From NCBI RefSeq assembly GCF_000737315.1, contig NZ_JMCB01000003.1, forward strand, positions 310,001 through 374,000: DNA of 64,000 nucleotides. The letters run 5' to 3'. The notes below the pieces were generated by a model. That model saw nothing but the letters and a program-made list of their open reading frames with translations. It was not told the DNA's origin and ran no database searches. A program made the translations under genes and the position numbers. Shown here one piece after another: positions 28,046 through 59,802 of this stretch; the stretch's first letter is position 1; each line of letters opens with the position of its first letter. The DNA is from Hyalangium minutum (GTDB lineage Bacteria; Myxococcota; Myxococcia; Myxococcales; Myxococcaceae).

Positions 28046-28048
28046 AGC

Positions 28049-28918: not shown

Positions 28919-28921
28919 GCG

Positions 28922-30064: not shown

Positions 30065-30144
30065 GGTGTTCGAAATATCTAATCCCGAGGAGGGGGCAGT
30101 GGGTAGCGGAAGAGTCCGAGGATGGATACTGGAGCGGCTCGGCC

Positions 30145-31674: not shown

Positions 31675-31750
31675 GGCGGGGGGCCACATACCAGAAAAGA
31701 CGCTCGGCTGGCTGCTCTCAGGAAGTGTTGAGTGGAGCAACCCGTCGGCC

Positions 31751-31780
31751 GTTGGACCGACCGACCGACCGGTGGGCAAC
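31751..31780. promoter_or_regulatory. (GACC)4 tandem/near-palindromic element in liuB/ytxH divergent region; candidate TetR-type operator
   Basis: gttggaccgaccgaccgaccggtgggcaac. Confidence 0.35.
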
Positions 31781-31898
31781 TAGGAAAGATTTTTCACGGG
31801 ATGCCGCGACGCGCCCCCCTGCCTACTTTGAAGGCTCAACGGGGGACAAAAACCGTTGGGGCGCGGTGCTCCCGGAACCATCGGCCCAGGAGGGAACC

Positions 31899-32243
31899 AT
31901 GTTCGCGACGAAGGCAAAGTGGGCGGCGAAGAGCGGCATCTATCGGAAGTGGTTGGCGCATAAGTTCCTGAACGACATTCCGCGTGTCGCGAAGGACAAG
32001 TGGGAGGATTTCGACGTGGATGAGCTGCTGCATGCGGTGGGTCTGACCACCTACAAGCCGGCCAAGGCGGGCTTCGGCACGCTGGGCGTGTTCATCATCG
32101 GCGCGGCGGTGGGCAGCATCGCGGCCCTGCTGCTGGCGCCCACCCCTGGCACCGAGCTGCGTACCCAGGTCAAGGACAAGGCCATGGGCTACCTGAACAA
32201 GCAGAACCTGGGCATCGGCCAGGAGAAGACGGCGAGCGCCTAG
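31899..32243 (+). CDS. YtxH-like small membrane protein
   Basis: GGAG RBS; GAAVGSIAALLLAPTPGTELR YtxH motif. Confidence 0.8.
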   Translation: MFATKAKWAAKSGIYRKWLAHKFLNDIPRVAKDKWEDFDVDELLHAVGLTTYKPAKAGFGTLGVFIIGAAVGSIAALLLAPTPGTELRTQVKDKAMGYLNKQNLGIGQEKTASA

Positions 32244-32320
32244 GTCTGAGCGTTTGTTGGCGGTAACAGACGGAGCCGTCGGGGCGGGGGCGCCTCGGCG
32301 GCTCTGGCTGTTTGCGGGGC

Positions 32321-33097
32321 TCAGCGGCCCTTGTAAACGGGCGGACGCTTCTCCGCGAAGGCGCGCAGGCCCTCGAGCCGATCCTCTGTCTTCAGGACTT
32401 CCTCGTACTTGCGCAGCTCCAGCGCCAGCGCTGCCTCCAGCTCCAGGCCCATGCCCTCGTTGATGGCGTGCTTGGCGGTGGACACCGCGATCGGCGCGTT
32501 ATCGACGATCGCCTCCGCCAGCGAGAACGCCGTCTCCAGCAGGTGGCCCTCCGGCGCCAGCCGGTTCACCAGCCCCACGCTGAAGGCCTCGGCCGCGTTC
32601 ATCCGCCGCCCTGTGAGGATCAGATCCTTCGCCCGCCCCGGCCCAATGAGCCGGCTCAGCCGCTGGGTGCCGCCACCCCCTGGGATGATCCCCAGCTTCA
32701 CCTCCGTCAGCCCCAGCTCCGCCGCCGGCGCCGCCACCCGGAGATCGCACGCCAGCGCCAGCTCCGTCCCTCCGCCGAACGCCGCTCCGTTGATCGCCGC
32801 GATGAACGTGCAGTCGCTCTTCTCGATTGCCCGGAACGTCTGCCGCAAACCATCGAGGAACGCCCGCACCTCGGGCTCACTCATCGTGGCGCGCTCCTTC
32901 AGATCCGCTCCCGCGCAGAACGCCTTGTCCCCCGCCCCCGTGATGATGACCGCACGGACCTGCCGCCCGCTGGAGACCCGCCCCACCATCTCCCCGAGCT
33001 CCCGGAGCATGGCCCGGCTGATCGCGTTGCGCCGGTCCGCCCCGTCGATGGTCCAGATCTCGATGGCTCCCCGTGCGTCGATCTTGAACTCTGCCAT
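32321..33097 (-). CDS. liuC: 3-methylglutaconyl-CoA hydratase (LiuC), crotonase family
   Basis: [38 protein letters not shown]; closely resembles M. xanthus LiuC as I recall it. Confidence 0.9.
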
Positions 33098-42314: not shown

Positions 42315-43289
42315 TCAGGCCCGCTGCCGCTGGGCCCGCTTCTCCCGCTCGCCCAGCGCGGCCTGCAGGAACTTGCCGGCCAGCTTGCGGCCGATGAGCT
42401 GCTGCGCCAGCGCTCCGGCCTCCACGAGCCTTTCCAGGTTGATGCCCGTGTCCACGCCCATGCCATGGAACATGAAGACCGCATCCTCGGTGGCGAGGTT
42501 GCCCGCGGCGCCCGGCGCGTAGGGACACCCGCCCAGCCCGCCGATGCTGGCGTCGAACGTGGTGACGCCGGCCGACAGCCCCACCAGCGAGTTGGCCAGC
42601 GCCGTGCCGCGCGTGTCGTGCAGGTGCAGCGCCAGCTTCTCCACGGGGATGTACTTGATCAGCGCCTCGAGGATCTCCTCGGTCTGCCGAGGTGTCCCCA
42701 CGCCGATCGTGTCCCCCAGGCTCAGCTGGTACAGGCCCATGTCCACCAGCTTGCGGCAGATGTCCACCACCCGCTCCACCGGCACATGGCCCTCATAGGG
42801 GCAGCCCCACACGGTGGACAGGTAGCCGCGCACGCGCATCCCCGCCTGAGCGGCGGCGGTGGACACCTCGCGCGAGGCCTCCAGCGCCTCGGCGATCGTC
42901 TTGTTGATGTTCTTCTTGGAGTGGGCCTCGGAGGCCGAGATGAAGACGGCCGCCTCCTCGAGCCCCGCCTCGCGCGCGCGGACCAGGCCCTTGAGGTTGG
43001 GCACCAGCGCGGAGAACGTCACGCCCGGCTTCTTCCCCACCAGGCGCAGCACCTCCTCGGCGTCGGCGAGCTGGGGGATCCACTTGGGTGACACGAACGA
43101 CGTCACCTCGATCCGCTTCTCACCGGCGGCCACGAGCGCCTCGATGAGGCGGGCCTTGTCCTTGGTGGGCAGGGTGCGCAGCTCGTTCTGCAGACCATCC
43201 CGAGGGCCGACCTCATAGACGTCGACCCGCTTGGGAAGGCTGCCGAGCCAGCCACCTACGCGCGCTCTGGAATGTTCGTTCGAATCCAC
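42315..43289 (-). CDS. Hydroxymethylglutaryl-CoA lyase
   Basis: [45 protein letters not shown]; start codon uncertain. Confidence 0.93.
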
Positions 43290-43660
43290 TGGACGATGTC
43301 CTGCGTCGAGCTCCCGGGGGTGAAGATCTCCGTGACCCCCATGCCCTTGAGCTTGGGAATGTCGTCGTCCGGGATGATTCCGCCTCCAAACAGTCGGATG
43401 TCGTCGGCCTTGTTCTGTTTCAACAGGTCGATGACGGCGGGAAAGAGCGTCATGTGCGCGCCGGACATGATGGACATGCCGATCGCGTCGACGTCCTCCT
43501 GGATGGCGGCGTTGACGATCATCTCGGGCGTCTGGTGCAGCCCTGTGTAGATGACCTCCATGCCCGCATCGCGCAAGGCCCGTGCGATGATCTTCGCCCC
43601 ACGGTCGTGCCCGTCCAGGCCCGGTTTGGCCACCAGAATTCGAAGCTTCCTCTCAGCCAT
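43256..43660 (-). CDS. Cobalamin-binding small subunit of acyl-CoA mutase (IcmB-like)
   Basis: [12 protein letters not shown] (DxHxxG), SIMSGAH, FGGGIIP, FTPGS. Confidence 0.92.
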
Positions 43661-44381
43661 GTCGCAGCTCAGCTCCCACGATGAGGTCGGTCGAAGCGGA
43701 AGACAGCGGCTCGCCCTCCAGGCTGCCGTGCACCCACTTCGTCGAAAGTCCTGTCGCTTCCAACAGTTGGCGCAGTTCCGCAAGGGGATAGTAGCGGATG
43801 GTGTACACCCCCGAAAGCACACGACCGGTCGGTAGGGTGAGGCGGCGGCGCCCGTGATCCATGCCGGTGTCGGGATCGAAGCGGCTCTCCTCCTCCAGGA
43901 GGCTGCCGTCCGGGAGGGTGCGCTGGAAGGCCGCGCCTGGCTGCTCGCTCAGGCGCTCGTAGGGCACGGTCTGGAAGACCAGGAGCCCCCCGGGCCGCAG
44001 GCACCGTGCCACCTCCTGGAGGATGACGCGGTGCTCCGTCTCGGAGAAGGCGAACAGCGTCGAGTACCACGCGTAGGCCCCCGCCAGGGATCCGCTCTGG
44101 AACGGCAGGGCGCGGAGATCTCCCCGGATCGCGGGGAAGCCGGGGGCTCGCTGGGACAGGGAGTATGGGTCCAGCTCCAGCCCCACCACCCGGCCCTTCA
44201 GGGCTCCCGAGGCATTCAGCGGCGCGGCGTGGCGCCCATGGCCGCAGCCCAGATCCACCACGGGGCCGGGCAGCGTCAGGCCGGAGAAGGCCTGATCCAG
44301 GTAGGCCACCTCCTTGGCCGTCAGCTCGGGCGAGAGGAAGGGCCGCGTGCTGCGCAGGTAGAGCTCGCCAAAGAAGCTCAT
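43653..44381 (-). CDS. Class I SAM-dependent methyltransferase
   Basis: [24 protein letters not shown]; stop overlaps start of the B12-binding gene. Confidence 0.88.
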
Positions 44382-44618
44382 TTCAATTCCTCTCATCGAA
44401 AGAGGTGATCTCGGGACTTGCCGCTTTGCAAAGTCTTGCATGCCTCATGACGCTGCACGACAGGTCGGGTGGCCTCAGGATTCGTGGCCACAATCTTTAC
44501 ATGAGAGGCTTCATTATGTTTGGGTAGAAGCACTTCGATGGAGTCGAACACCCCCCGACTCGCAGCAGCCATGATCCGACGTCCCATCGAATTCAGCCAC
44601 ACACACGAGGGCAGGTTC

Positions 44619-45263
44619 ATGGCACAGGCCACGCCGCAGTCCCCAGAGCTCGAGGTCCGGACGCAGCCACACGGGAACAGGGTTTCGGAGGAGCGGCCGT
44701 TCCCCAATGCCGCGATGGTGCTCTTCCCCCTGGGAGTGGAGCACCCGGAGGGAGAGGGTCCCCTGCCCTCCCCTATCGCCGAGGGGGATGATGAGCCGAC
44801 GGATCCTCGGGCCGAGGGCGCGTGCCTCTTCGATCTGTCCTCCGAGGAGTGGCGGTTCGTGCGCAATGCGCCGCTGGTGGGTTTTCTGATCGTGGCGGGC
44901 GCGGACGGCACGGTGTCCTCGCGCGAGCGGCAGGCGCTGGTGGATGTGCTCGAGGCGGGCAAGGACTCCGAGTGCGGCCTGTTCCAGGCCGTGTGCCGTG
45001 AGCTGTACCGGAAGCGCGCCCGGCTGACGGAGATCTTCGTCACCGACAACCTCGAGCAGGATCAGCTGTTGGAGACGTACAAGCTCGTGAGCGGCAAGCT
45101 GGGCTCGCACGAGGCCGAGCAGTTCCGGGCGTGCCTCCTGAAGCTGGGCCATGAGGTGGCCAAGGCCTCCGGGGGCCTGTTGACTTCGTGGGGCTGGCTG
45201 CGTGGCGCGGAGAAGCGCGCCCTGGCCGAGCTGGGTGAGCTCTTCACCCAGCATCTGTCGTAG
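44619..45263 (+). CDS. Hypothetical protein, TerB-like fold
   Basis: GAGG RBS; FLIVAGADGTVSSRERQAL, VAKASGG..AEKRALAEL pattern. Confidence 0.55.
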   Translation: MAQATPQSPELEVRTQPHGNRVSEERPFPNAAMVLFPLGVEHPEGEGPLPSPIAEGDDEPTDPRAEGACLFDLSSEEWRFVRNAPLVGFLIVAGADGTVSSRERQALVDVLEAGKDSECGLFQAVCRELYRKRARLTEIFVTDNLEQDQLLETYKLVSGKLGSHEAEQFRACLLKLGHEVAKASGGLLTSWGWLRGAEKRALAELGELFTQHLS

Positions 45264-45315
45264 CCGTTGGCCGTGAGTGGGGCCCCTCGTGGGAGCCCCC
45301 CTCCTGCTCCGCGGG

Positions 45316-47199
45316 TTAGAACGCGCCGCCCTCGCGGTAGGCGCCCCAGACCTTGCGGAACACGTCGCAGATCTCGCCGAGCGTGGCGTAGGCCTTCACC
45401 GCCTCGAGCACCGGCGGCACCATGTTGTCCGTGCCGCGCGCCGCCGCCTCCACCTTGGCCAGCGCCGCCTGTACCGCCTCGTTGTTGCGCTCAGCCTTCA
45501 CCTGGGCCAGCCGCGCCTTCTGCTCCTCGGCCACCTTGTCGTCGATGTGGAGCAGCTCGATGGGCGCGTCCTTGTCCGCCTTGAACGCGTTCAGGCCGAC
45601 GATCAGCCGATCGCCCTGTTCCACCTCGCGCTGGAAGCGGTAGGCGCTCTCGCCGATCTCCTTCTGCGGGTACTGCTCCTCCACCGCGCGGATGATGCCG
45701 CCCATCTCGTCGATGCGGCGGATGTACTCCATCGCCCGCTTCTCCGTCTCGTCGGTGAGGTACTCCACGTAGTAGCTGCCCGCGAGCGGATCCACCACGC
45801 GGTCCACGCCGGACTCGTGAGCGATCAGCTGCTGGGTGCGCAGCGCGATCGTCACCGACTCCTCGGTGGGCAGCGCGTACGTCTCGTCCAGCGAGTTGGT
45901 GTGCAGCGACTGGGTGCCGCCCAGCACCGCTGCCATGGCCTGCAGCGCCGTGCGCACCACGTTGTTGTAGGGCTGCTGCGCCGTCAGCGACACGCCGGCC
46001 GTCTGCGCGTGCGTCTTCAGCTGCCACGAGCGCGGGTTCTTCGCGCCGAAGCGGTAGCGCATGACGTTGGCCCAGATGCGGCGCGCGGCGCGGAACTTGG
46101 CGATCTCCTCGAAGAAGTCGTTGTGCACGTCCCAGAAGAAGCTCAGCTGGGGCGCGAAGGAGTCCACGTCCATCCCGCGCTTCACGCACTCCTCCACGTA
46201 GCCGATGCCGTCGGCCAGCGTGAAGGCCAGCTCCTGGACGGCCGTCGCTCCGGCCTCGCGGATGTGGTAGCCGCTGATGGAGACCGGGTACCACTTGGGC
46301 ATGTGCTTCGTGCAGAACTCGATCATGTCCGTGACGATGCGCACGGCCGGCCGAGGCGCGACGATCCACTCCTTCTGCGCGATGTACTCCTTGAGCATGT
46401 CGTTCTGGATGGTGCCCGCGAGCTTGGCCATCGGAACGCCCTGCTTCTCACCCACCGCGATGTACATGCAGAGCGCCACCACCGCGCTCGCGTTGATGGT
46501 CATCGAGGTGGTGACCTTGTCCAGCTGGATCCCGTCGAAGAGGATCTCGAAGTCACGCAGCGAGGAGATGGCCACGCCCTCCTTGCCCACCTCGCCGCGG
46601 CTCATGGAGTGGTCCGCGTCGTAGCCCATGAGCGCCGGCATATCGAAGGCCGTGGACAGGCCTGTCATGCCGTGGCTGATGAGGTACTTGAAGCGCTTGT
46701 TGGTGTCCGCCGGCGTGCCGAAGCCCGCGAACTGGCGCATCGTCCAGAGCCGGCCCCGGTACATGGTGGGCTGAGGGCCGCGGGTGAACGGGAACTGGCC
46801 GGGCAGCCCGATGCGGTCGGCCTGCTCGTCCTTGCGATCGGCCAGCGTCAGCACGTCCGGAATGGGGATGCCCGAGTCCGTGGTGAACTGCTTGCGCCGC
46901 AGCGGCATCTTCGCCGTCACCTGGGCGAGCTCATCCTTGGCCCACTTCTCCGCCTGCTTCGCGGCAGCCTTCACCGAAGCGGCGTCATAGTGCTTCAGCG
47001 CGGCGGCCTTCTTCTTTGGGGCGGCCTTCTTCACCAGAGCCTTGCCCGCCTTGCCGGCCTTCTTGGCCACCTGGGCGACCTTCTTGGCGGCCTTGGCCAG
47101 CTTGGAGGGCTTGCCCCCCTTCTTGCTGACGGAGGCCTTCTTCGGGGACTGGGAGGCAGCGGAGCGAGCGACGGTCTTCGGAGCGGTTCGCGCAGGCAT
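45316..47199 (-). CDS. Adenosylcobalamin-dependent acyl-CoA mutase large subunit, isobutyryl-CoA mutase (IcmA)-type
   Basis: [57 protein letters not shown]; no B12-binding domain. Confidence 0.9.
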
Positions 47200-47255
47200 G
47201 GCGCGGGGATGTAGCACCCGCATCCAGGGGTCGCAAGCCGGGCGGAGCGAGCGTG

Positions 47256-48492: not shown

Positions 48493-49446
48493 CTAGCGGC
48501 GCACGATAGCGCCCATGGGCAGGGAACGCTCGGACGAGTAGCTCCGGCTGCCTTTCGCTGGGGACAGGGCTCGGGCGGCCGCCGCGACCAGCAGCACCAC
48601 GGGCAGCACCGCCACCAGGTCCACGGCGTAGTGGAAGCGCCCGGCCACCGTCGCCACGATGAGGCCGATTCCGGGCAGGAGCATCGTCCAGAAGACCCGC
48701 CGCGAGAACCGGAGCGCGTAGAAGAGGACCAGCAGCGTCACCCCGGTGTGGCCCGACGGGAAGCAGTCCCGGATGAACACGGGGGTGCGCATCAGCGAGT
48801 CCAGTACCGACGTCACGACCACCCCCTGGAGCGGTCCCGGGAAGGCGCTCGCGAGGAAGAGGCGCGGCCCGATGGCAGGCACGGCGATGTAGGCCGCGTA
48901 GCCCACGGTGAAGAAGAGGCCCATCGCCAGCAGGAACTCATCGAACGCCGCGGCCTTTCGATGGAGGTACAGCGTGACGCCCAGCACCATGGCCCAGGCG
49001 AAGTGGCCGTAGTAGCAGACCATCAGCACGTCCTGGAGCCACGGCGGCACCGCGCTCGAGAGCACCACCGAGACCTGAACGCCGAACAACCGCTCTTCCA
49101 GGGTGGCGAGCTGCGCATCCCGAAGCACGGGGTTGATCGCATCCACGAGCGGGTTGAGCAGCTCATGGCCCAGCCCCGCCACCGGGAGCAGCCAGAAGTC
49201 CGCCACCCAGCGCAGCGGCCGGACCCGAGGCCACCAGGACTGCAGCATGCGGAGCACCACCAGCCCCAGCGCGAACGCGGCGAAGCCCCCGGCGGAGCGC
49301 AGCGCTCCCGGTGCCCAGCGGCACGGACCCACGAGCGCCAGTGCGGCGACCGAGCAGGCGGCAATCAGAACGCAGTCGACCGGCTTGAAGCGCACCTTCC
49401 TACGGCGAGCAAGCAACCTCGCGCTCTGGTGGGACCAGGGGCTCAT
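48493..49446 (-). CDS. PAP2-superfamily membrane enzyme, AUR1/inositol-phosphorylceramide-synthase-like
   Basis: Multiple TM helices; PAIGPR, CFPSGHT, RFHYAVDL motifs; ATGA-coupled to MMPL gene. Confidence 0.75.
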   Translation of the reverse strand: MSPWSHQSARLLARRRKVRFKPVDCVLIAACSVAALALVGPCRWAPGALRSAGGFAAFALGLVVLRMLQSWWPRVRPLRWVADFWLLPVAGLGHELLNPLVDAINPVLRDAQLATLEERLFGVQVSVVLSSAVPPWLQDVLMVCYYGHFAWAMVLGVTLYLHRKAAAFDEFLLAMGLFFTVGYAAYIAVPAIGPRLFLASAFPGPLQGVVVTSVLDSLMRTPVFIRDCFPSGHTGVTLLVLFYALRFSRRVFWTMLLPGIGLIVATVAGRFHYAVDLVAVLPVVLLVAAAARALSPAKGSRSYSSERSLPMGAIVRR

Positions 49447-51938
49447 GCGGACTTCCGCTCTTCAGACGGAGCGGCTGGCTGGTCGCCCTCCGTGCGGATG
49501 TTCAGGCTCTGGACCACCGCAGCCTCCCCTGCCCTCTCCCCATGCCGGAACTTCCAGCGCTCCAGCAGCGCCAGCAGCGCCGGAAAGAACACCGTTGTTC
49601 CCAGGAAGGTGCACACGACTCCGAGGAGCGCAATCTGTCCGATGGAGCGCAATCCCTGGTGGCTGGCCACCAGCAAAGCGCCGTAGCCCGCGGCGTTGGA
49701 CAGCGTGGCCGCCACGGCGGCGAACCCCGTGTGCCGGACCACATGGCCCAGCGAGCCCGGGCCCTCTTCCTCATAGCGGTGGAAAAGATGCACGGAGTTG
49801 TCCACCGCGATCGCCAGCAGGTTGGGCAGCACCACCGCGTTGATGAAGTTGAGCTGCACGTCGAACAGGTACATGCCCCCGGCCAGGCACACCATGCCGA
49901 GGAACAGCGGCCCCGCGACGAGCATCGCCTTCTTCAGGCTGCGCAGGCTGGCGAAGATGGCCAGGAACACCACCAGCGCCGCCGCCCCCAGGATGAACGG
50001 CCCGTCCCCGCGCACCATCGCGAAGATGCGCGAGGCGATGCGGTTGCTGTCCAGCACCGACAGATCGATCCCCCGCACGTGCGCTTCATAGACCACCTCG
50101 TCGAGCTGTGACGCCCAGCGCTGGAGATCCCGCGTGTCGTAGTTGGACACCGAGGGGAACAGCAGCAGGAACATCCCCTTGCCATCCAGCGCCTCGAAGC
50201 GGCGGCGGGCCTCCACCGGCAGTTGCTCGATGCCGTACGGGGTGGCCCCCAACATGGCCTGGAAGTCCTTCACGCGAGGGTCTTCCCGGACGGACTCGGG
50301 CATCTGGGACACCAGCTCTCGCAGGCGGGCGATCTCCGCCTGGCGGTGCTCCACATCCTCGGGGATCAGATCGGCCAGCGAGGCGGAGCGCAGGAACACC
50401 GAGTGCGTGCTGTGCCGGCTGTGCACCTCAGCGATCACCTGCCGCACCTTCCGGGCCTGCTCCAGATCGTCCACGAGCAAAATGGCCGGGTTGAGCGGGT
50501 TGCCGAGCTGCTCGGTGATGTGATCGTCCAGGCGCGAAGAGGGCGAGTCGCCCTTCAGCTTGCGCATGTCCGTCTCGAAGCCGAGCCGAGGTGCCACGAA
50601 CGCCGAGAAGCCCGCGAAGGCCACCACCACCAGCGCCAGGCCCGCCACCACGGACGTAGGCCAGCGCTTCCCCGCACGCACGGGAGCGCGCTCCCCCGCC
50701 GGGGCCTTGGCGGCCGCTGAGGGGGCACGGAAGGGACGGATCCGCTCGGCGATGGACAGCAGCGACGGCCCCAGCCCGTACGCGGCGAGCACCGCCAACA
50801 TCACTCCCATGCCCGCCAGCAGGCCAAACTGTTGGAAGGCGTGGAACTGCGCCAGGAGCAGCACCAGGAAGGCCGCCGCGTTGGTAAAGGCCGACGTGAG
50901 CGCGCCCGAGAACGTGCCTCGCACCGCCGCGCTGAGCGCCTCGCGCGAATCCAGGTGCTGCCGCTCCTCCCAGTAGCGCATGCCCAGGTGGACGCCGTAC
51001 TCGATGCCCAGTCCGATCAGGATGGCCACCAGGAAGCCCGTCACCACGTTCAGGTGCCCGATGACCAGCTGCGCGAAGGCGAACGTCAGCACCACGCTCA
51101 CCATCACCGGCACTCCCACCACCGCCAGCGCCGACACGCGCCGCGTGGCCAGCAGGATGATGCCTACCGCCAGCAGCGCGGACAGAATGCCCGCGTTGGC
51201 CAGGTCCCGCCGCATCACCGAGTCCTCTTCGATGCGGCTCTGGAAGTTGCCTGTGGCATCCACCGTCACGCCCGGGTAGCCCTGGGCCACCTCCGCCGCG
51301 ACGGCCTTGGCCTCGTCCACGAACTGGCGCGCAAAGCCCAGGTCCGCCGCCGTCCCGGCCGGCTTGAGGAAGAGGTACACCTCTCGGCCATCCGCCGACG
51401 CCAGCTCCTCCTGGATGGGCGACTCAGGCAGGTACTTGCGCTGGAGCTCCTCAAAGGTAGGCGGCGCCTCCTGATTCTCCAGCTCCACGTAGAACGGATT
51501 GAGCTGCCTCCGCTCATACGTCACCCGGGCCTCGAGCTCGTCGTGCAACGCTCGCAGGCGCTCGGCTGGCATGAGCAGCAGTCCGTTGCGCAGGAAGAAG
51601 CCCACGTCAAAGTGGTGCTCCACGTAGCGGACCTGGGGCAGCTTCTCCAGTCGCCCTTGCAGCTCCTTCGCGTAGGCCCGCAGCGTGTCTGGAGCAGCCC
51701 CCTGGGCCCGCAGCACCAGGTACCCGTCCCCACCTGCCTTCTGTGACACCCGCGTCAGATCCTGCACTTCGCGCGCGCCCTCGGGCAGCAGCTCCACGAA
51801 CGAGCCGCGGAACTCCAGCCGCGAGGCCAGCAGCGCCCCACCCAGTCCCAGCGCGGCGAAGAGCCCCACCATCCAGAGAGGACGCGCCACGGCTGTATGG
51901 AGGAACCGCTCAAACCACCGTTGACGCAAATTCGGCAC
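49443..51938 (-). CDS. MMPL/RND-family lipid transporter (HpnN-like architecture)
   Basis: Two repeats of TM + large periplasmic domain + TM bundle; LIGLGIEYGVH and LAIAVDNSVH RND motifs; GTG start inferred. Confidence 0.88.
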   Translation of the reverse strand: MPNLRQRWFERFLHTAVARPLWMVGLFAALGLGGALLASRLEFRGSFVELLPEGAREVQDLTRVSQKAGGDGYLVLRAQGAAPDTLRAYAKELQGRLEKLPQVRYVEHHFDVGFFLRNGLLLMPAERLRALHDELEARVTYERRQLNPFYVELENQEAPPTFEELQRKYLPESPIQEELASADGREVYLFLKPAGTAADLGFARQFVDEAKAVAAEVAQGYPGVTVDATGNFQSRIEEDSVMRRDLANAGILSALLAVGIILLATRRVSALAVVGVPVMVSVVLTFAFAQLVIGHLNVVTGFLVAILIGLGIEYGVHLGMRYWEERQHLDSREALSAAVRGTFSGALTSAFTNAAAFLVLLLAQFHAFQQFGLLAGMGVMLAVLAAYGLGPSLLSIAERIRPFRAPSAAAKAPAGERAPVRAGKRWPTSVVAGLALVVVAFAGFSAFVAPRLGFETDMRKLKGDSPSSRLDDHITEQLGNPLNPAILLVDDLEQARKVRQVIAEVHSRHSTHSVFLRSASLADLIPEDVEHRQAEIARLRELVSQMPESVREDPRVKDFQAMLGATPYGIEQLPVEARRRFEALDGKGMFLLLFPSVSNYDTRDLQRWASQLDEVVYEAHVRGIDLSVLDSNRIASRIFAMVRGDGPFILGAAALVVFLAIFASLRSLKKAMLVAGPLFLGMVCLAGGMYLFDVQLNFINAVVLPNLLAIAVDNSVHLFHRYEEEGPGSLGHVVRHTGFAAVAATLSNAAGYGALLVASHQGLRSIGQIALLGVVCTFLGTTVFFPALLALLERWKFRHGERAGEAAVVQSLNIRTEGDQPAAPSEERKSA

Positions 51939-52081
51939 CCGGCACCACCTTGTCCGCCGGACAAGAGCAAAATTCCGGCCGATCCATTTACAGGGCTTCA
52001 GCAACACCGCCCAAGGCGGAGGACTTCCAGGGGGTTGTAAATTACCCTGACATCGCTGCCATAGCGCCGGAAGTCTGCACC

Positions 52082-52110
52082 TTGACAGTGCTGGTTTCCC
52101 TCTTTATTCA
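52082..52110 (+). promoter_or_regulatory. Putative sigma70-type promoter of spt operon
   Basis: TTGACA, 17-nt spacer, TATTCA. Confidence 0.4.
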
Positions 52111-52155
52111 CGGCCCCGCGTCGCCCCGAAGGAGGTCGCACGCTGCATCAGAGTG

Positions 52156-52179
52156 TGTCAGGCCGGTACACATCTGACA
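52156..52179. promoter_or_regulatory. Inverted repeat TGTCAG-N12-CTGACA upstream of spt; candidate operator
   Basis: Perfect 6-bp arms; a further CTGACAT occurs at 52047-52053. Confidence 0.3.
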
Positions 52180-52233
52180 TCTGCGTGCGCCGAGCCCGCT
52201 CCAGGATCCCCCGACGCAGACAGAAAGACCATC

Positions 52234-53793
52234 ATGAGCGACGTCTTCGACAAGTGCAGTAACTGGAAGGATTACCGCATCGCGAAGGCCACCGGCCTTT
52301 ACCCGTACTTCCGTTCCATCGAAGCGTCCCACGGCGCCACGGAGGTCGAGATCGAAGGCCGCCGCGTCATCATGGTGGGCTCCAACAATTACCTGGGTCT
52401 GTCGGCCGATCCGCGCGTGAAGGAGGCGGCGATCAAGGCGGTAGAGAAGTTCGGCACCACGTGCTCGGGCTCGCGCCTGCTCAACGGCACGCTGGCGCTG
52501 CATGAGGAACTGGAGGCGAAGCTGGCCAAGTTCCTCAACCGCGAGTCGGCCCTGGTCATTTCCACGGGTTTCCAGACGAACCTGGCGCTGTCCTCCATCC
52601 TGGGCCGCCATGACATTGTCTTCACCGATCGGCAGAACCACGCCTCGCTGGTGGACGGCATTCGCCTGGGCTTCGCCACCGAGCGCAAGTTCCGCCACAA
52701 CGACATGGAGCACCTGGAGCAGCTGCTGTCGGCGGCGGATCCGGACGCGGGGAAGATCATCGTCACCGACGGCGTGTTCTCCATGGAGGGCGACATCTGC
52801 AACCTGCCCCGGATCGCCGAGCTGGCGAAGCAGTACAACGCCCGGGTGATGACGGATGACGCGCACTCCATGGGCGTGCTGGGCGAGACGGGCCGCGGCG
52901 TGCCGGAGTACTTCGGCCTGGAGGCGGAGACGGACCTGACGATGGGCACGTTCTCCAAGAGCTTCGCATCGCTGGGCGGCGTGCTGGCGGGGCCCTTCGA
53001 GGTCATCAACTACATGCGCCACAAGGCGCGCTCGGTGATCTTCTCGGCGTCCATGACGCCGGCTTCCATTGCGGCGGTGCTCAAGTCGCTGGAGATCATC
53101 GAGGCGGAGCCGCAGCGGCGCGCGCGCCTGCTGGACATCGCGGAGAAGATGCACAACGGCTTCCGCGCCATGGGCTTCGACACGGGCGTGTCGGTGACGC
53201 CGGTGGTGCCGGTGCACATCGGCGATCAGGTGAAGTGCTTCCGCTTCTGGAAGGCGCTGCACGAGGCGGGCGTGTTCGCCAACCCCGTCATCCCCCCGGC
53301 CGTCGAGGCGGGCCACGCGCTCATCCGCACCAGCTTCATGGCCACGCACACGGATGCGCAGCTGGATCGCGTGCTGGACACCTTCGAGAAGATCGGCCGG
53401 CGCATGGAAGTGATTCCCGAGACGCGGCCCACGGTGTACGAGCCGGTGAAGATCGCTCGGCCGGGCACGGGCGTGCGCTCTAACAAGGCCTCCGAGAAGT
53501 GGGCGGCGGGCTCTGTTGGCCAGCTGGCGGACAAGGGCGGGCTGACGCTCGAGCAGCTGTCGCGCATGTCCTCGCGCGAGGTGGCTGGGAAGATCTTCGA
53601 CGCGGTGGAGCACCTCACCTGGCGCGCGGCGAACCTGCAGCCGGCGGACCTGCGCAAGCTGGGCGGTGCCTCCAAGCGCCTGTGGGAGAAGCGCGGCGAG
53701 CTGCCCGGCCTGCTGCTGGAGAAGGGCGCTCACTTCTTCATGCGCAACGGCCAGGACGGCACCACCACCACCACCCAGGCGGAAAGGAACTAG
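52234..53793 (+). CDS. spt: Serine palmitoyltransferase (alpha-oxoamine synthase family) with C-terminal extension
   Basis: GSNNYLGL, GSRLLNGT, NHASLVDG, DGVFSMEGD, DDAHSMG, GTFSKSFASLGG (SPT-type Lys motif); followed by GNAT and SDR genes. Confidence 0.85.
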   Translation: MSDVFDKCSNWKDYRIAKATGLYPYFRSIEASHGATEVEIEGRRVIMVGSNNYLGLSADPRVKEAAIKAVEKFGTTCSGSRLLNGTLALHEELEAKLAKFLNRESALVISTGFQTNLALSSILGRHDIVFTDRQNHASLVDGIRLGFATERKFRHNDMEHLEQLLSAADPDAGKIIVTDGVFSMEGDICNLPRIAELAKQYNARVMTDDAHSMGVLGETGRGVPEYFGLEAETDLTMGTFSKSFASLGGVLAGPFEVINYMRHKARSVIFSASMTPASIAAVLKSLEIIEAEPQRRARLLDIAEKMHNGFRAMGFDTGVSVTPVVPVHIGDQVKCFRFWKALHEAGVFANPVIPPAVEAGHALIRTSFMATHTDAQLDRVLDTFEKIGRRMEVIPETRPTVYEPVKIARPGTGVRSNKASEKWAAGSVGQLADKGGLTLEQLSRMSSREVAGKIFDAVEHLTWRAANLQPADLRKLGGASKRLWEKRGELPGLLLEKGAHFFMRNGQDGTTTTTQAERN

Positions 53794-53799
53794 GCGCCC

Positions 53800-54978
53800 A
53801 TGGCCCTCCCCGCCGAGTCGTCCAGCGCCACCACCCTGCCCCCAGTTCCCTCGGATGTGACGGTGAAGCCCGTGCGGACCAGCGCGGACAAGACCGCGTT
53901 CATCCGCATGGTCTATCCGATCTACCAGGGGGACCCGAACTGGGTGCCGCCCTTGGAGATGGAGCGAAACGACTTCCTCGACCGGAAGAAGAACCCGTTC
54001 TTCGAGTTCGGTGAGGTGGAGCTGTTCCTGGCGCTCCGGGGTGGCCAGGTGGTGGGCCGCATCGCCGCGGTGAGGGATCCCCACTACAACGAGTTCCACG
54101 GCACCAACGAGGGCTTCTTCGGCCTGTTCGAGTGCATCAACGACGCGGGCGTGGCTCGGGCCCTGTTCGACGCGGCGTCTCAGTGGCTGCGCGCTCAGGG
54201 CTTCGTGAAGATCCTCGGGCCGATGAACTTCTCCACCAACCACGAGGTGGGGCTCCTGGTGGACGGGTTCGATCGGACGCCGGCGATCATGACGACGTAC
54301 AACCCGCCGTACTACGGCGCGCTGATCGAGGCGAACGGCTTCACGAAGGCCAAGGATCTGTGGTCCTTCGAGCTGTCGTCCTCGGTCCAGCCGCCGGAGA
54401 AGGTGGCGCGCATCGCGGAGAAGATCCGCCAGCGCGAGGGCGTCACCGTCCGCTCGGTGGACCTGAAGAACTTCGAGGCCGAGGTGCGCCTCATCAAGAC
54501 CATCTACAACGCGGCCTGGGAGAAGAACTGGGGCTTCGTCCCGATGACGGACCGCGAGTTCGATCACCTGGCGCGGGACATGAAGCAGATCGTCCGGTCG
54601 GAGCTGCTGCTGATCGCCGAGGTGAAGGGCGAGCCAGTGGCCTTCTCCATGACGATCCCGGACGCCAACGAGGCCCTGAAGGAGGCCAAGGGGCGGCTGA
54701 CCACGTTCGGCCTGCCCATCGGGCTGGTGAAGATGCTGCTGGCGGCGCGGAAGATCCGTCGGCTGCGGCTCATCACGCTCGGCATCAAGGAGGGCTACCG
54801 GCGCCGGGGCCTGGACGCCATCCTGTACCTGGACACCCTGCGCACTGCGCACCAACTAGGCTACGAGGGCGGGGAGATCTCCTGGACGCTCGAGGACAAC
54901 CACCTGGTGAACCGGGCGATCGAGTCCATGGGCGGCAAGCGCTCGAAGACCCACCGCGTCTACGAGCGCGCGCTCTAA
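53800..54978 (+). CDS. GNAT-family bacterial ceramide synthase (bCerS/YghO-like)
   Basis: DPNWVPPL, NPFFE, VVGRIAA, GFFGLFECIND, GPMNFSTNHEVGLLVDGF, YNPPYY, SWTLEDN; 6 bp after spt. Confidence 0.85.
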   Translation: MALPAESSSATTLPPVPSDVTVKPVRTSADKTAFIRMVYPIYQGDPNWVPPLEMERNDFLDRKKNPFFEFGEVELFLALRGGQVVGRIAAVRDPHYNEFHGTNEGFFGLFECINDAGVARALFDAASQWLRAQGFVKILGPMNFSTNHEVGLLVDGFDRTPAIMTTYNPPYYGALIEANGFTKAKDLWSFELSSSVQPPEKVARIAEKIRQREGVTVRSVDLKNFEAEVRLIKTIYNAAWEKNWGFVPMTDREFDHLARDMKQIVRSELLLIAEVKGEPVAFSMTIPDANEALKEAKGRLTTFGLPIGLVKMLLAARKIRRLRLITLGIKEGYRRRGLDAILYLDTLRTAHQLGYEGGEISWTLEDNHLVNRAIESMGGKRSKTHRVYERAL

Positions 54979-54995
54979 GCAGCAGCGGAGACAAC

Positions 54996-55997
54996 GTGAA
55001 GATCCTCCTGACGGGAAGCACCGGGTTCATCGGCCAGCGGCTGGCCAAGCGCATCGTCGAGCGGGGTGACACCCTGACGGCGCTCGTGCGGCGCACCTCG
55101 AAGCGGGGGGCGCTGGAGTCGCTCGGTGTGCGCTTCGCGATGGGCGATCTGCTCACGGGCGAGGGGCTCACCGAGGCCGTGAAGGATGTGGACTGTGTGC
55201 TGCACCTGGCCGGTGTCACCAAGTCCCGGGACGAGGCGGGCTACTTCCAGGGCAACGCCGAGGGCACCCGGCGGCTGGTGAAGGCCATGGCGGAGCTCCC
55301 TACCCCGCCTCGGCTCGTGTACTGCTCGTCGCTGGCGGCGGCGGGGCCCTCGGTGCCGGGACGTCCCCGGCGCGAGGAGGAGACGCCAGCGCCTGTCTCC
55401 CTCTACGGCCGGAGCAAGCTGGGCGGAGAGCAGGCGGTGCGGGAGTTTGCGGACCGCGTGCCCTCGGTGATCGTGCGGCCGCCGATCGTGTACGGGCCGG
55501 GAGATCAGGAGTTCCTGCCATCCATGCTGCCGATGGCGCGGCTGGGCGTGATGCTCAAGAGCGGCTTTGGCCCCAAGCTCTACTCGCTCATCCACGTGGA
55601 TGACCTGTGCACCGCGCTGCTGGCGGCGACCGAGCGGGGCCAGACGATGCGCGCGGGTGACGCGACGGCGGGCGTGTACATGGTGTCGGATGGCACGGAG
55701 CACCGGTGGGAGGACTTCTGCCAGGCGCTCGCGCAGGCCATGGGCCGTGCGAAGCCCACGGTGGTGTCGGTGCCCGAGACGGTCAGCTATGTGGTGGGAC
55801 TGGGCTCGGAGCTGGCGGCGCGCGTGAGGGGCACCATTCCGATTCTCAACCGGGACAAGGTCCGGGAGATGGCCTGTCCCGCGTGGACCTGCTCGATGGA
55901 GCGGGCCGCGAAAGAGCTGGGCTTCACGCCCGCCATCCCGCTGGCCCAGGGACTCGTAAGTGCTTTGGGCTCCGAGGCTCGGGCTTCGGGGCGCTAA
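54996..55997 (+). CDS. NAD-dependent epimerase/dehydratase-family SDR, probable ceramide reductase (CerR)
   Basis: GSTGFIG, HLAGVT, CSSLAAAG, YGRSK (YxxxK), RPPIVYGP; GGAG RBS + GTG. Confidence 0.75.
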   Translation: MKILLTGSTGFIGQRLAKRIVERGDTLTALVRRTSKRGALESLGVRFAMGDLLTGEGLTEAVKDVDCVLHLAGVTKSRDEAGYFQGNAEGTRRLVKAMAELPTPPRLVYCSSLAAAGPSVPGRPRREEETPAPVSLYGRSKLGGEQAVREFADRVPSVIVRPPIVYGPGDQEFLPSMLPMARLGVMLKSGFGPKLYSLIHVDDLCTALLAATERGQTMRAGDATAGVYMVSDGTEHRWEDFCQALAQAMGRAKPTVVSVPETVSYVVGLGSELAARVRGTIPILNRDKVREMACPAWTCSMERAAKELGFTPAIPLAQGLVSALGSEARASGR

Positions 55998-56015
55998 CTG
56001 CGCCCCACCCATACC

Positions 56016-56076
56016 CAGGTCTGACTGGTCAGACCTGAGGGTTGGCAGTAACGCCCAAGTCTAACCAGTTAGACTT
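56016..56076. repeat. Two related palindromes in the cerR/mlaC convergent gap; second may act as terminator
   Basis: CAGGTCTGAC-TG-GTCAGACCTG (56016-56037) and AAGTCTAAC-CA-GTTAGACTT (56057-56076) followed by TT. Confidence 0.75.
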
Positions 56077-56086
56077 TTGGGCCGGC

Positions 56087-56728
56087 CTACTTCCCGGTCG
56101 GAGCCTTCGGATCGGCGGTGCCCGTCGCCGCAGCCGGGGGCACATCCGCAGCCTTGGTGGTGGCAGCGGACTTCTCCAGCTGAGCCCGCTTGGTCTTCAG
56201 CGTGGAGAGCAGGCCGTCGAAGCCCTTGTCGGCCAGCAGCTTGCGGAACTGGCCTGCGTACGTCTCCACGAGGGACACCTCATCGGTGACGACATCGTAG
56301 ATGCGCCAGGTCGCGCCCTTCCCCGCCCCCTTGTAGAGCTTGTAGTCGACGGGGATCTGGTCCTTCTTCACTGCAAGGGTCGTGTTGACGACAGCCTCGT
56401 CGCCCTTGATGGTCTCCTTGCCGTACTTCACGTCCGCGTTGGCTTGGCCGATGGCCTTCTGAGCGTACGAGGCGCGCAGCAGCCCCTTCATGGTCTCGGT
56501 GAAGTCCTTGCGCTGCTCGGGCTTGAGCGTGTCCCACGTCTTGCCGAGTGCCCGCTTCGCGAGTTCCTCGAAGTCGACGAACTTCTCCACGACAGAGGCG
56601 AGCTGATCCACCGTGGCCCCAGGCGCGCCGGCGGCCTTCTGGACGTCCGCGTTGCCGGCCTTGACGACCTCGAGCGGAGTGGTGGGAGCGGCAGCGAGCA
56701 GCGTTGCGGCGATCAAAGGTGCAAGCAT
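56087..56728 (-). CDS. MlaC/Ttg2D-family periplasmic lipid-binding protein
   Basis: Signal peptide; FVDFEELAKRALG, F...LL..SY, VDYKL, WRIYDVVTDEVSLVETYAGQF. Confidence 0.88.
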   Translation of the reverse strand: MLAPLIAATLLAAAPTTPLEVVKAGNADVQKAAGAPGATVDQLASVVEKFVDFEELAKRALGKTWDTLKPEQRKDFTETMKGLLRASYAQKAIGQANADVKYGKETIKGDEAVVNTTLAVKKDQIPVDYKLYKGAGKGATWRIYDVVTDEVSLVETYAGQFRKLLADKGFDGLLSTLKTKRAQLEKSAATTKAADVPPAAATGTADPKAPTGK

Positions 56729-56787
56729 CGTTTTTGAGTCTCCGGGATGATGGTCGGAAGTGACGACAGGAGGAGCCAGTCCGTTAT

Positions 56788-58419
56788 TCACTGTCCTGCA
56801 GGCGCCATGCCGGTCACCCGGTTGAGCGCCGCTATTCCCACACGGGCGTCATGCCAGCTCTTGCCCTTGTCGGCTGAGGCCTGAGCAAGCGCTGTGAAGG
56901 CGTCCACCAGCTCGCGGGTGTCTCCCGTGCCGAGATCGAAGGCGGCATAGGCGGCGGTGGCCCAGCGGCGGGCGTTCTTCTCCGCGTCCGTCATGGCGCG
57001 GGCCTTGGCCAGCGCCGCCGTCAGCGCGCCATGCGTCTGGGTCACCTCCAGGCGGATGGCGGACTGGAGCAGCCGCTGCTGGGCCTTCAGCTTGTCCAGC
57101 TCCGCGCGGGATTGGTCGAGCTGCGCGTTCTTCATCGGGATGTCGAAGGTGCCGCGCGCCGCGATGCCGATGCCTGCGGAGCGATCGTTATAAGGATCGT
57201 AGGCGAAGGGTGTGCGCTGCGGGGTGGCGTTGGAGGTGTACGCGAACTTCGCGAAGCCCACGATCCCCAGGTCCGGGTAGTACGCACGCTCGCGGATGAG
57301 GACCTCCTGCTCGCGCGCCGCGATGCCCGCCTGGATGGCCGTCAGCTCGGGCCGGCGCTGCTCGGCCAGCGCCAGGGCCTTCTCCAATGTGGGCGGCGAG
57401 AACTCGTCCTCCTCCAGCGGCAGATCCACGCTGACGACCTGCACGGGCTCTCCAGGCTTGGCACCCGACAACAAACGGATGGCCTCCAGTGCCAGGATCC
57501 GTCCTTGCTGGGCCTCGGCGCGGCGGGACTCCAGCACCTGCCGGAAGAAGTTCAGCTTGTACGTGTCGATCTTGGAGACCTGCTGGGACTCCTCGTCCAG
57601 CAGCTCCTGGATGCGCTTGCCGGCATCCTCCAGTCGCTTCGCTGTCTCCTCGAGCTGCACGATTCCCGCGTTCGCGAGCTGGTACCCATAGAACGCCTGA
57701 GCAGCCTGGAAACCCGCCTCGGCGCGGGCCCGCTCCCGCAGCGCCGCGCCGATGATGGGGCCCTGGTCTCCCGCCTTCTCCAGCGCCGTGAGCTTGCCGA
57801 ACGTGTAGATGGGCAGCAGTGCGTTGACCTCCGCGCGCACCGTGACGCCCAGCGTGCCGAAGTTCCAGTCGCCCTCCAGCGTGGCCTCCGTCGTGGGAGG
57901 ACCGCCGAGCCCGTCATTGCGCGCCTCGGGCACCGGGCCGCCAAAGCCCACCACCGTTTCGAACTTGGGGAACCACGCCCAGTGGGCTTGCCTCTGGAGC
58001 GCTTGCAGCCGGTGAAGCTCCGCCTCGGCCTCCTCGACGCGCGCATCCGAGCGGCGCGCACGCGCCACGAGCTCCTCGAGCGTGAGCGGCCCGCTCTTGG
58101 CGGCCCCCTCGGCCGTGCCTGGAGCCTGCTGCTCGGTGGAGCGCGTCGCGTCCTGGGCGGCCTGATCCTGGGCTTGGGGCGTGGCGCTCTGCGCGCCCTC
58201 TCCCACCGTGGGCTGTCCCGGGAGCGTCGCGGGAGCGCCTGTTATGGGGGATGCCGTGCCCTGCCCGGCTTGAGAGGGGGTCGAGGTGCCCTGCCCTCCC
58301 GAGATGGGAGCGGCGGGTGCTGTGCCGGGCACGCCCTGCGCCGCCGCGCTCCCTGCCGAGAGCGCCAGCCCGATTCCCACGAGTCGTCCGAGTCCTGTCC
58401 GTTTCACCGATGGCCTCAT
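56788..58419 (-). CDS. TolC-family outer membrane efflux protein
   Basis: Signal peptide, P/A/Q/T-rich linker, LTLEELVARA, PIYTFGK, LAEQRRPEL, AAFDLGTGDTRELVDA. Confidence 0.85.
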   Translation of the reverse strand: MRPSVKRTGLGRLVGIGLALSAGSAAAQGVPGTAPAAPISGGQGTSTPSQAGQGTASPITGAPATLPGQPTVGEGAQSATPQAQDQAAQDATRSTEQQAPGTAEGAAKSGPLTLEELVARARRSDARVEEAEAELHRLQALQRQAHWAWFPKFETVVGFGGPVPEARNDGLGGPPTTEATLEGDWNFGTLGVTVRAEVNALLPIYTFGKLTALEKAGDQGPIIGAALRERARAEAGFQAAQAFYGYQLANAGIVQLEETAKRLEDAGKRIQELLDEESQQVSKIDTYKLNFFRQVLESRRAEAQQGRILALEAIRLLSGAKPGEPVQVVSVDLPLEEDEFSPPTLEKALALAEQRRPELTAIQAGIAAREQEVLIRERAYYPDLGIVGFAKFAYTSNATPQRTPFAYDPYNDRSAGIGIAARGTFDIPMKNAQLDQSRAELDKLKAQQRLLQSAIRLEVTQTHGALTAALAKARAMTDAEKNARRWATAAYAAFDLGTGDTRELVDAFTALAQASADKGKSWHDARVGIAALNRVTGMAPAGQ

Positions 58420-59725: not shown

Positions 59726-59729
59726 TGAG

Positions 59730-59802
<73 letters not shown>

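Follow-up and report, generated by a model that had tools for sequence, protein, structure and literature searches.

A sphingolipid synthesis locus of Hyalangium minutum with a putative RND pump, MlaC and TolC-family route to the outer membrane

A locus of seven genes in Hyalangium minutum encodes enzymes of ceramide synthesis side by side with proteins of putative function in lipid transport. The locus is located within a stretch of 64,000 nucleotides (contig NZ_JMCB01000003.1, positions 310,001 to 374,000; referred to as the window) and comprises the serine palmitoyltransferase gene spt, the candidate genes for ceramide synthase (bCerS), cerS, and ceramide reductase, cerR, and the genes for an MMPL/RND protein, a PAP2 protein, an MlaC-family protein and a TolC-family protein (OEP; for coordinates see Table 1). 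On balance, the family assignments and the comparative gene order favor a sphingolipid synthesis-plus-trafficking cluster, in which RND pump, MlaC protein and OEP would form a modular route from the inner to the outer membrane. The cargo of this route is probably a finished phospho-sphingolipid rather than bare ceramide. A functional link is supported most strongly by the linkage of the genes, kept through rearrangement, across two deep groups of the Myxococcota.

Gene families were assigned with Pfam and NCBIfam, and the coordinates were taken from the called genes of the source record. All seven genes were present with the families and orientations named in the original prediction, which had proposed a complete and undescribed system with a dedicated route for ceramide. 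The stop of the MMPL gene and the start of the PAP2 gene overlap by 4 nt, spt and cerS are separated by 6 nt and cerS and cerR by 17 nt, and the OEP gene lies immediately 5' of the MlaC gene on one strand. The divergent gap between MMPL and spt is 298 bp with the start at 51935, which is backed by Hyalangium homologues, and essentially matches the 295 bp first reported; with the annotated MMPL start, the gap is 361 bp. No genes for MlaD, MlaE, MlaF, MlaB, MlaA or an ABC ATPase were found in the 64-kb window, as judged from called genes within 10 kb and, elsewhere, from open reading frames supported by the GC content at third codon positions, and none of the genes in the window encodes an HlyD/MFP (AcrA-type) adaptor domain. 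The initially noted absence of mlaFED and adaptor genes from the locus thus extends to the whole window.

The linkage was found in rearranged form in a second group of loci (loci other than the window carry L numbers). L051 and L052, the record of the latter being labelled Anaeromyxobacteraceae, encode MMPL, OEP and MlaC proteins that are 26-30% identical to those of the window. Here, OEP-MlaC is divergent from a gene series encoding a CDP-alcohol transferase, a class-III aminotransferase, a GFO/IDH/MocA oxidoreductase, MMPL, Spt, CerS and CerR. The use of the Anaeromyxobacteraceae MlaC as query yielded six more contexts (Table 1). At least five gene orders besides that of the window were distinguished (L052/L083, L085/L100, L084/L101, L099 and L087), resulting in at least six in total, and no flanking gene is common to the window-type and the Anaeromyxobacteraceae-type groups. 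In the latter, MMPL is co-operonic with the oxidoreductase and aminotransferase genes, and MlaC with genes for a CDP-alcohol phosphatidyltransferase, GtrA and an HAD phosphatase. The co-operonic position of transport genes and head-group enzymes, together with the gene content of L087, renders a finished phospho-sphingolipid a likelier cargo than bare ceramide. The transport genes of this group are thus intermixed with an inositol-lipid cassette of Bacteroides type, made up of MIPS, CDP-alcohol transferase, GtrA, HAD phosphatase and AUR1-like PAP2 genes. The head-group gene set (L052, L083-L085, L087, L099-L101) also includes genes for an NTP-transferase, a fatty-acid hydroxylase or DAGK_cat in some of the loci. 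The occurrence of GFO/IDH/MocA oxidoreductase and aminotransferase suggests an amino-cyclitol or otherwise modified inositol head group; we know of no description of such a head group on a phospho-sphingolipid.

To survey the conservation of the locus, a scan with the GNAT protein encoded by cerS was carried out with one genome per species, yielding 80 loci at 91% to 44% identity. These were scored by tblastn and by profile searches of six-frame open reading frames; genes were counted as present or absent within 10 kb on one contig (many contigs came from metagenome-assembled genomes), and the locus tree was built by neighbor-joining from Spt plus CerS. A homologue search with the window MMPL was unsuited to distant contexts: the best 120 matches listed were all close orthologues from Myxococcaceae, with identities of 65% or more. 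The crown Myxococcaceae/Archangiaceae keep the arrangement of the window, which in M. xanthus corresponds to MXAN_3744-3750, with MXAN_3744 as OEP, MXAN_3745 as MlaC-like protein, MXAN_3749 as MMPL and MXAN_3750 as probable head-group enzyme. Among 40 assessable Myxococcota spt loci, MMPL and MlaC genes co-occurred in 31, while one had only MMPL, two only MlaC and six neither (Fisher's exact p=5e-5, phylogeny ignored). Mid-clade loci on an MCM-AT ... spt-cerS ... FBA backbone either carry MMPL and OEP-MlaC to the two sides of spt (L011, L022, L026) or lack both (L023, L033, L036); both are also missing in the more distant L037, L048 and L054. Although located on opposite sides of spt, MMPL and OEP-MlaC are acquired or lost as a set; about three or four such events were counted as independent, as opposed to three discordant loci. 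PAP2 genes occur beside spt in several loci without MMPL. In Myxococcota, the surroundings of an spt-less GNAT paralogue (about 150 kb) contained no MMPL, MlaC or OEP gene. The same was true of the DNA up to 10 kb from the GNAT gene in other phyla (Verrucomicrobiota, Poribacteria, Planctomycetota, Bacteroidota and KSB1 included; about 440 kb around bCerS homologues, and about 600 kb for all controls), with a 28-bit OEP-profile hit in L060 as the sole exception. Co-occurrence with spt across Myxococcota had been named as a check in the original prediction; for MMPL and MlaC, it was seen in 31 of the 40 spt loci.

The transport proteins were assigned to families rather than to characterized members. 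The MMPL protein matched Pfam MMPL with 147 bits in two stretches and, in addition, a sterol-sensing domain. Hydropathy predicted the classical RND topology of 12 transmembrane segments (TM), in which TM1 and TM7 are each followed by a periplasmic loop of about 200 residues and then by five further segments (TM2-6 and TM8-12). Its closest relatives of solved structure were HpnN (5KHN/6WU0, E=3e-23) and then MmpL4/5. The scores against the HpnN models TIGR03480 (248 bits, cutoff 752) and NF052374 (130 bits, cutoff 1100) fell far below the equivalog cutoffs, and so did that of the second-best NCBIfam match, BstA (229 bits, cutoff 1400); by these scores, the window MMPL is HpnN-like and not HpnN. 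The MlaC protein is a firm member of PF05494 (128 bits, cutoff 26) with a hydrophobic, signal-peptide-like N-terminus from Met22. HpnM was its best NCBIfam match, the scores against HpnM (TIGR03481, 86 bits, cutoff 160) and PRK15117 (38 bits, cutoff 195) being below the equivalog cutoffs, and its relatives in the PDB were 2QGU, 8DTE and MlaC chains. OEP was identified as a TolC-family protein by PF02321, matched in two stretches (88 bits, cutoff 22), and starts with a Sec-type signal peptide that ends in AAA-QG and lacks a lipobox. A phmmer search of the PDB gave no sequence match for OEP and the score against TolC (TIGR01844) was 36 bits at a cutoff of 225, indicating a divergent member of the family. 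The signal peptide is followed by a low-complexity stretch of some 80-110 residues rich in Pro, Gln, Ala and Thr (Table 1), and OEP orthologues from outside Hyalangium could be aligned only from about residue 120.

The PAP2 protein scored 45.9 bits against Pfam PAP2_3 (cutoff 27) and also matched PAP2_C. A single-sequence search of the PDB gave no match; similarity to AUR1 emerged only with a profile of 14 orthologues, which matched the yeast AUR1 inositol phosphorylceramide (IPC) synthase (9VJ3/9IVC) over about 210 residues at E=2e-12, followed by the phosphatase PgpB at E=4e-3. S231, H233, H272 and D276 of the catalytic SGH ... HxxxD motifs are invariant across the 14 orthologues. The protein thus combines PAP2_3 membership and catalytic motifs with a closer relationship to AUR1 than to lipid phosphatases. 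Because the orthologue profile matches AUR1, the PAP2 gene product is probably the AUR1-type head-group transferase of the locus, and the overlap of the two genes indicates translational coupling of MMPL to this probable sphingolipid head-group transferase. The AUR1 homologue of Bacteroides, BT_1522, was experimentally shown to be a phosphoinositol-dihydroceramide synthase, and ceramide phosphoinositol is cited as a lipid of M. xanthus (PMC9246714). In light of the IPC synthase homology and the M. xanthus report, the head group is most likely phosphoinositol, or else a related phospho-head group such as ethanolamine or glycerol phosphate.

Spt belongs to the pyridoxal phosphate-dependent class I/II aminotransferase fold (Pfam Aminotran_1_2, E=1.7e-54), and its top NCBIfam match was serine palmitoyltransferase NF047600 (513 bits, curated cutoff 640), ahead of BioF and Kbl. 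The window, Myxococcota loci and at least nine loci of other phyla show spt and cerS next to each other, in part with cerR. The C-terminus of Spt is extended by about 125 residues with the core E..TWRA.N..PEDL..L....LW..R (Table 1). This extension is kept in Myxococcota, is absent from Spt of every other sampled phylum and matched no Pfam family; it might have a role in membrane or partner binding. The candidate bCerS, encoded immediately 3' of spt, matched the GNAT family weakly (Acetyltransf_1, 30.8 bits, cutoff 20.7) and no NCBIfam model. GNAT genes without nearby spt, 49-62% identical to that of the window, occur in L038-L041, L044, L045, L049, L053 and L056, and hence membership in the GNAT family is insufficient to identify a bCerS. 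In many of the mid-clade Myxococcota loci, cerS or cerR is followed in tandem by a second GNAT paralogue, which is 46-60% identical to the single copy of the window and may provide a second N-acyl chain specificity. The SDR protein (Pfam Epimerase, E=9e-35) is encoded 3' of cerS in many loci of many phyla and is a candidate ceramide reductase CerR. The gene follows cerS in Hyalangium and M. xanthus; it is missing from this position in loci of Corallococcus, Citreicoccus, Archangium and Vitiosangium, where cerS abuts MlaC (Table 1).

An alignment of the intergenic region from 12 Myxococcaceae/Archangiaceae loci (phylogenetic footprinting) revealed a sigma-70-like promoter element upstream of spt, TTGACA-17 nt-TATTCA, whose hexamers are kept in at least 80% of the loci. 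A second conserved leader element in the same loci, GGAGG.CGC.CGC, is located about 95 nt 5' of the spt ATG and is too distant for an spt ribosome-binding site. A generic sigma-70 promoter scan of 48.3-58.8 kb returned no promoters and thus missed the spt element, and a terminator scan of the same region returned one terminator-like site, which is below the chance level of shuffles.

Taken together, these data are consistent with the following route. Spt, the GNAT ceramide synthase and the SDR reductase would make ceramide at the inner membrane, as suggested by family assignment and conserved clustering, and the AUR1-type PAP2 enzyme would add a phospho-head group, most likely phosphoinositol. 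The MMPL/RND pump, driven by the proton motive force, would then withdraw the completed lipid from the inner membrane at its periplasmic leaflet, comparable to HpnN and hopanoids, and the secreted MlaC-family protein would ferry it through the periplasm. At the outer membrane, OEP may act as docking or insertion partner or as acceptor and would be dispensable or replaceable; the OEP-MlaC unit would here be joined to an adaptor-less RND pump. As a more tentative possibility, OEP-MlaC may represent an unrecognised lipid-transfer unit, in which a TolC-family protein instead of the MlaA lipoprotein partners MlaC and which, with MMPL, would constitute a three-part conveyor for inositol-phosphosphingolipids.

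Several observations weigh against a sphingolipid-trafficking role of the cluster. TolC-family channels normally depend on an adaptor in the periplasm, for which the window has no gene. Synteny among close relatives also covers the flanking housekeeping genes (aminotransferase, methylmalonyl-CoA mutase, aldolase), and the linkage in these species is therefore weak evidence on its own. Six spt-bearing Myxococcota loci (L023, L033, L036, L037, L048, L054) and the loci of all other phyla sampled have none of the three transport genes within 10 kb, indicating that the route is not general, and three further loci are discordant, with OEP-MlaC in the absence of MMPL (L015), MlaC only (L034) or MMPL only (L003). 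OEP is missing while MlaC is kept in six Archangium loci of one clade and in L084/L101; this loss in at least two lineages shows that OEP is not an obligatory third component. Conversely, L087 carries the transport module with no spt within 10 kb, and OEP-MlaC pairs occur in a FabF/DciA housekeeping setting without MMPL and spt, as would fit a generic lipid role. Finally, developmental RNA-seq data of M. xanthus (eLife 2019 supplements) list only MXAN_3745 (group 8) and MXAN_3747 (group 9) as regulated, and these different expression groups lend no support to co-expression.

The gene content of L087 would also be explained by a module whose cargo is set by the head group and which exports inositol- or aminocyclitol-phospholipids, possibly glycerolipids too, to the outer membrane or cell surface. 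We regard this as rather unlikely. The co-operonic head-group genes of the Anaeromyxobacteraceae-type loci, the combination of cassette, MIPS and all three transport genes in the absence of spt, cerS and cerR in L087, and the coupling of the window MMPL to the AUR1-like enzyme are all in line with such a module. However, the mid-clade locus L022 has MMPL without PAP2, L013, L023 and L036 have PAP2 without MMPL, and spt-cerS-cerR lie within a few kb at most loci. Moreover, the window contains neither a MIPS nor a PI-synthase gene, leaving ceramide as the sole local substrate pathway.

OEP-MlaC pairs of a third lineage were obtained from MlaC relatives of 31-37% identity and by a metagenome scan with an alignment of four MlaC sequences. 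OEP is directly 5' of MlaC in all eight of the nine loci that have upstream sequence; L097 is too short upstream. The neighbours in the longer loci include genes for FabF, DciA, S-adenosylmethionine synthetase and PriA, with FabF 5' of the pair in L088, L090, L091 and L093 and DciA too in L088, L090 and L093, and no MMPL, Mla ABC or sphingolipid gene was found within 10 kb. A conserved protein of 330 residues without Pfam match is encoded on the opposite strand after OEP-MlaC in L088 and L091. OEP-MlaC looks like a self-standing two-gene unit whose proteins would work together, and its occurrence without spt indicates that the pair is not intrinsically specific for sphingolipids. A canonical MlaD-MlaC pair (L089) was about equally distant from the window (about 30% identical), and the gene context of P0247 (MlaC 32% identical) was uninformative. 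According to a generic role in envelope lipid homeostasis, OEP-MlaC, and perhaps MMPL, would move glycerophospholipids, in anterograde direction or retrograde as Mla, and the linkage to spt would be inherited synteny. The third-lineage pairs, the synteny of the whole block including its housekeeping flanks in close relatives, an MCE-family gene (MXAN_3719) about 25 kb off in M. xanthus and the spt-bearing Myxococcota without transport genes nearby all accord with this role. Nevertheless, it appears quite unlikely: the adjacency is kept through at least six gene orders with strongly diverged proteins and unrelated flanks, the transport genes are interleaved within head-group enzyme operons, and their joint gain and loss occurs on a fixed backbone, with none in the control DNA.

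Alternatively, MMPL may be confined to the inner membrane as a flippase or scaffold that presents ceramide, or oxidised ceramide, to the AUR1-like transferase or to CerR, with OEP-MlaC as a separate system. A translocation step is needed in Caulobacter, where Spt and bCerS are reported to be cytoplasmic and CerR periplasmic, and where a flippase or transporter had long been missing (PMC11087976). In addition, MMPL is co-operonic with PAP2 and not with OEP-MlaC, and the discordant loci L003, L015 and L034 point the same way. However, the RND/MMPL proteins characterized to date, HpnN and MmpL3-5, are to our knowledge exporters directed at the periplasm or outer membrane and not flippases. As the correlated presence of MMPL and OEP-MlaC and their joint relocation in the Anaeromyxobacteraceae-type loci favor one system, an MMPL restricted to the inner membrane is quite improbable. 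An AcrAB-TolC-type efflux pump and a canonical Mla system were rejected, as no adaptor and no MlaFEDB or MlaA, respectively, are encoded in the window.

With respect to the synthesis-plus-trafficking cluster, the dedicated ceramide route of the original prediction holds insofar as linkage and co-variation place MMPL, MlaC and usually OEP with the sphingolipid genes; OEP is not an obligatory part, and ceramide is the less likely cargo. The system can also not be called complete, as no inner-membrane flippase was identified and some spt-bearing Myxococcota have no transport genes near spt.

The surroundings of the locus contain further features. Genes resembling those of leucine/isovaleryl-CoA and methylmalonyl/isobutyryl-CoA metabolism surround the sphingolipid genes in two blocks, encoding MeaB, acyl-CoA dehydrogenase, carboxyltransferase, enoyl-CoA hydratase, an HMG-CoA-lyase-like protein, a B12-binding protein and an MCM-like mutase. 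This region, which we take to correspond to the liu region of M. xanthus, could be a source of iso-branched starters for myxobacterial lipids. The only Rfam match was a tRNA gene just 3' of the flanking aldolase gene. A large protein unrelated to the locus has a Ser/Thr protein kinase domain at its N-terminus together with a long WD40 beta-propeller array, an architecture typical of myxobacterial eukaryote-like kinases.

Table 1. Features of the window and of the compared loci. Positions refer to the respective sequence; aa, amino acids; TM, transmembrane segments.
Sequence	Feature	Position	Strand	Remarks
Window	PAP2_3 gene	48493-49446	-	317 aa, about 5-6 TM; last in MMPL operon
Window	MMPL/RND gene	49443-51935	-	830 aa from GTG 51935; open reading frame reaches 52007; annotated start 51872
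Window	Divergent intergenic region	51936-52233		upstream DNA shared by MMPL and spt
Window	spt promoter-like element	52083-52111	+	
Window	Second conserved leader element	within 52083-52143	+	
Window	spt (serine palmitoyltransferase)	52234-53793	+	519 aa; Pfam Aminotran_1_2
Window	Spt C-terminal extension	53416-53793		residues ~395-519
Window	GNAT-fold gene, candidate bCerS (cerS)	53800-54978	+	392 aa; weak Pfam Acetyltransf_1
Window	Extended SDR/epimerase gene, candidate cerR	54996-55997	+	333 aa; Pfam Epimerase and 3Beta_HSD
Window	MlaC-family gene	56087-56728	-	213 aa; alternative GTG start 56791 would overlap OEP stop
Window	TolC-family (OEP) gene	56788-58419	-	Pfam OEP, two repeats, 88 bits
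Window	OEP low-complexity stretch	58050-58380		residues ~43-125
Window	tRNA-Ala (GGC)	59729-59802	-	
Window	CoA-metabolism genes	27005-33097 and 42315-47223		
Window	Kinase-WD40 protein gene	7764-11252	-	1162 aa
L052	Head-group gene set	2016-5812 and 12244-13293		
L083	Anaeromyxobacteraceae-type locus			Anaeromyxobacter paludicola; L052 order plus PAP2_3 and DAGK_cat
L085, L100	Anaeromyxobacteraceae-type loci			CDP-alcohol transferase-GtrA-HAD genes relocated behind MlaC
L084, L101	Anaeromyxobacteraceae-type loci			L085/L100 order without OEP
L099	Anaeromyxobacteraceae-type locus			MMPL-GFO-AT3 / OEP-MlaC-CDPOH-GtrA-HAD / PAP2_3-MIPS-fatty-acid hydroxylase / spt-cerS-cerR
L087	Anaeromyxobacteraceae-type locus			transport module, MIPS and head-group cassette; no spt, cerS or cerR within 10 kb
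L088	Third-lineage OEP-MlaC	976-3191		high-GC
L090-L096, L098	Third-lineage OEP-MlaC			high-GC
L088	Gene of conserved 330-aa protein	3276-4268		
L091	Gene of conserved 330-aa protein	10733-11725		
L011	Second GNAT copy	7457-8599		
L013	Second GNAT copy	11257-12363		
L015	Second GNAT copy	8511-9689		
L022	Second GNAT copy	11330-12502		
L023	Second GNAT copy	11219-12379		
L026	Second GNAT copy	5505-6680		
L033	Second GNAT copy	12202-13332		
L034	Second GNAT copy	11253-12425		
L036	Second GNAT copy	10211-11392		
L008-L010, L012, L014, L019-L021, L024, L028-L030, L055, L058	Loci without cerR after cerS			

Among known systems, HpnN is required for the localisation of hopanoids to the outer membrane in Rhodopseudomonas palustris, and the MlaC-like HpnM and MlaA-like HpnS have been proposed as its partners based on synteny and AlphaFold 3 (PMC12324291, preprint). 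Like the locus in the window, HpnN-HpnM-HpnS combines an adaptor-less HAE3/MMPL-type RND protein, an MlaC-family carrier and an outer-membrane partner beside biosynthesis genes for a non-glycerolipid; it differs by the hopanoid pathway and an MlaA-type lipoprotein in place of sphingolipid genes and a TolC-family beta-barrel/alpha-tunnel protein. The Mla system (MlaFEDB - MlaC - MlaA/OmpC) likewise relies on a periplasmic carrier of MlaC fold, presumably as the shuttle that links a machine of the inner membrane to a partner in the outer membrane, but in Proteobacteria this machine is an ABC transporter, a role that a pump of the RND type, driven by the proton motive force, would fill here. BstA-BstB-BstC for sterols in Methylococcus and the mycobacterial MmpL exporters share the broad RND family, a specialised lipid directed toward the outer membrane and a periplasmic binding protein, whereas their periplasmic and outer-membrane partners are of unrelated folds. 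AcrAB-TolC-type pumps also have RND and TolC-family proteins encoded in one locus; their RND protein is of the HAE1 type and works with an adaptor, whereas that of the window is MMPL/HAE3-like and an MlaC-type carrier stands where the adaptor would be expected. The inositol-lipid cluster BT_1522-BT_1526 of Bacteroides thetaiotaomicron shares the AUR1-type PAP2 with the window and MIPS, CDP-alcohol transferase, GtrA and phosphatase with the Anaeromyxobacteraceae-type loci, including the CDP-transferase-GtrA order of BT_1523-BT_1524 (PMC9246714). It has no linked RND, MlaC or OEP gene, and the myxobacterial clusters add the GFO/IDH/MocA oxidoreductase and class-III aminotransferase.

In Caulobacter crescentus, sphingolipid transport depends on LptF2/LptG2 (bioRxiv 10.64898/2026.04.12.717747, April 2026), paralogues of the Lpt ABC transporter and thus a machinery wholly unlike that of the window. 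According to the authors of this preprint, Myxococci, which have a single lptFG copy, and Bacteroidetes must use another route, and the MmpL gene beside spt in M. xanthus was proposed as an alternative sphingolipid transporter; the MlaC-like and TolC-like genes are not mentioned (10.64898/2026.04.12.717747). The view that the route is undescribed therefore has to be restricted, since its MmpL part is already in print, and holds for MlaC and OEP, for which no description was found. Literature searches on sphingolipids with MlaC and RND, or on MlaC and Myxococcus, returned no description of the present combination, and a search by M. xanthus locus tag returned a single paper, which has MXAN_3744 among TolC/type I secretion system genes. 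Relative to the published accounts that were found, the OEP-MlaC pair, the head-group enzyme of AUR1 type and the superclusters of the Anaeromyxobacteraceae-type loci are additions.

The Caulobacter LptF2/G2 system (2026) is the only experimentally supported bacterial route for sphingolipids that was found in the literature, and the locus yields three tractable transport candidates in M. xanthus (MXAN_3749, MXAN_3745 and MXAN_3744) along with a probable head-group enzyme (MXAN_3750). If the proposed route is true, the design of RND pump, MlaC-like carrier and outer-membrane partner would extend from hopanoids to sphingolipids, and a TolC-family protein would be able to serve lipid trafficking without an adaptor. 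It would also represent a second solution for bacterial sphingolipid transport, mechanistically unrelated to the Lpt-like route of Caulobacter, implying that this transport evolved more than once.

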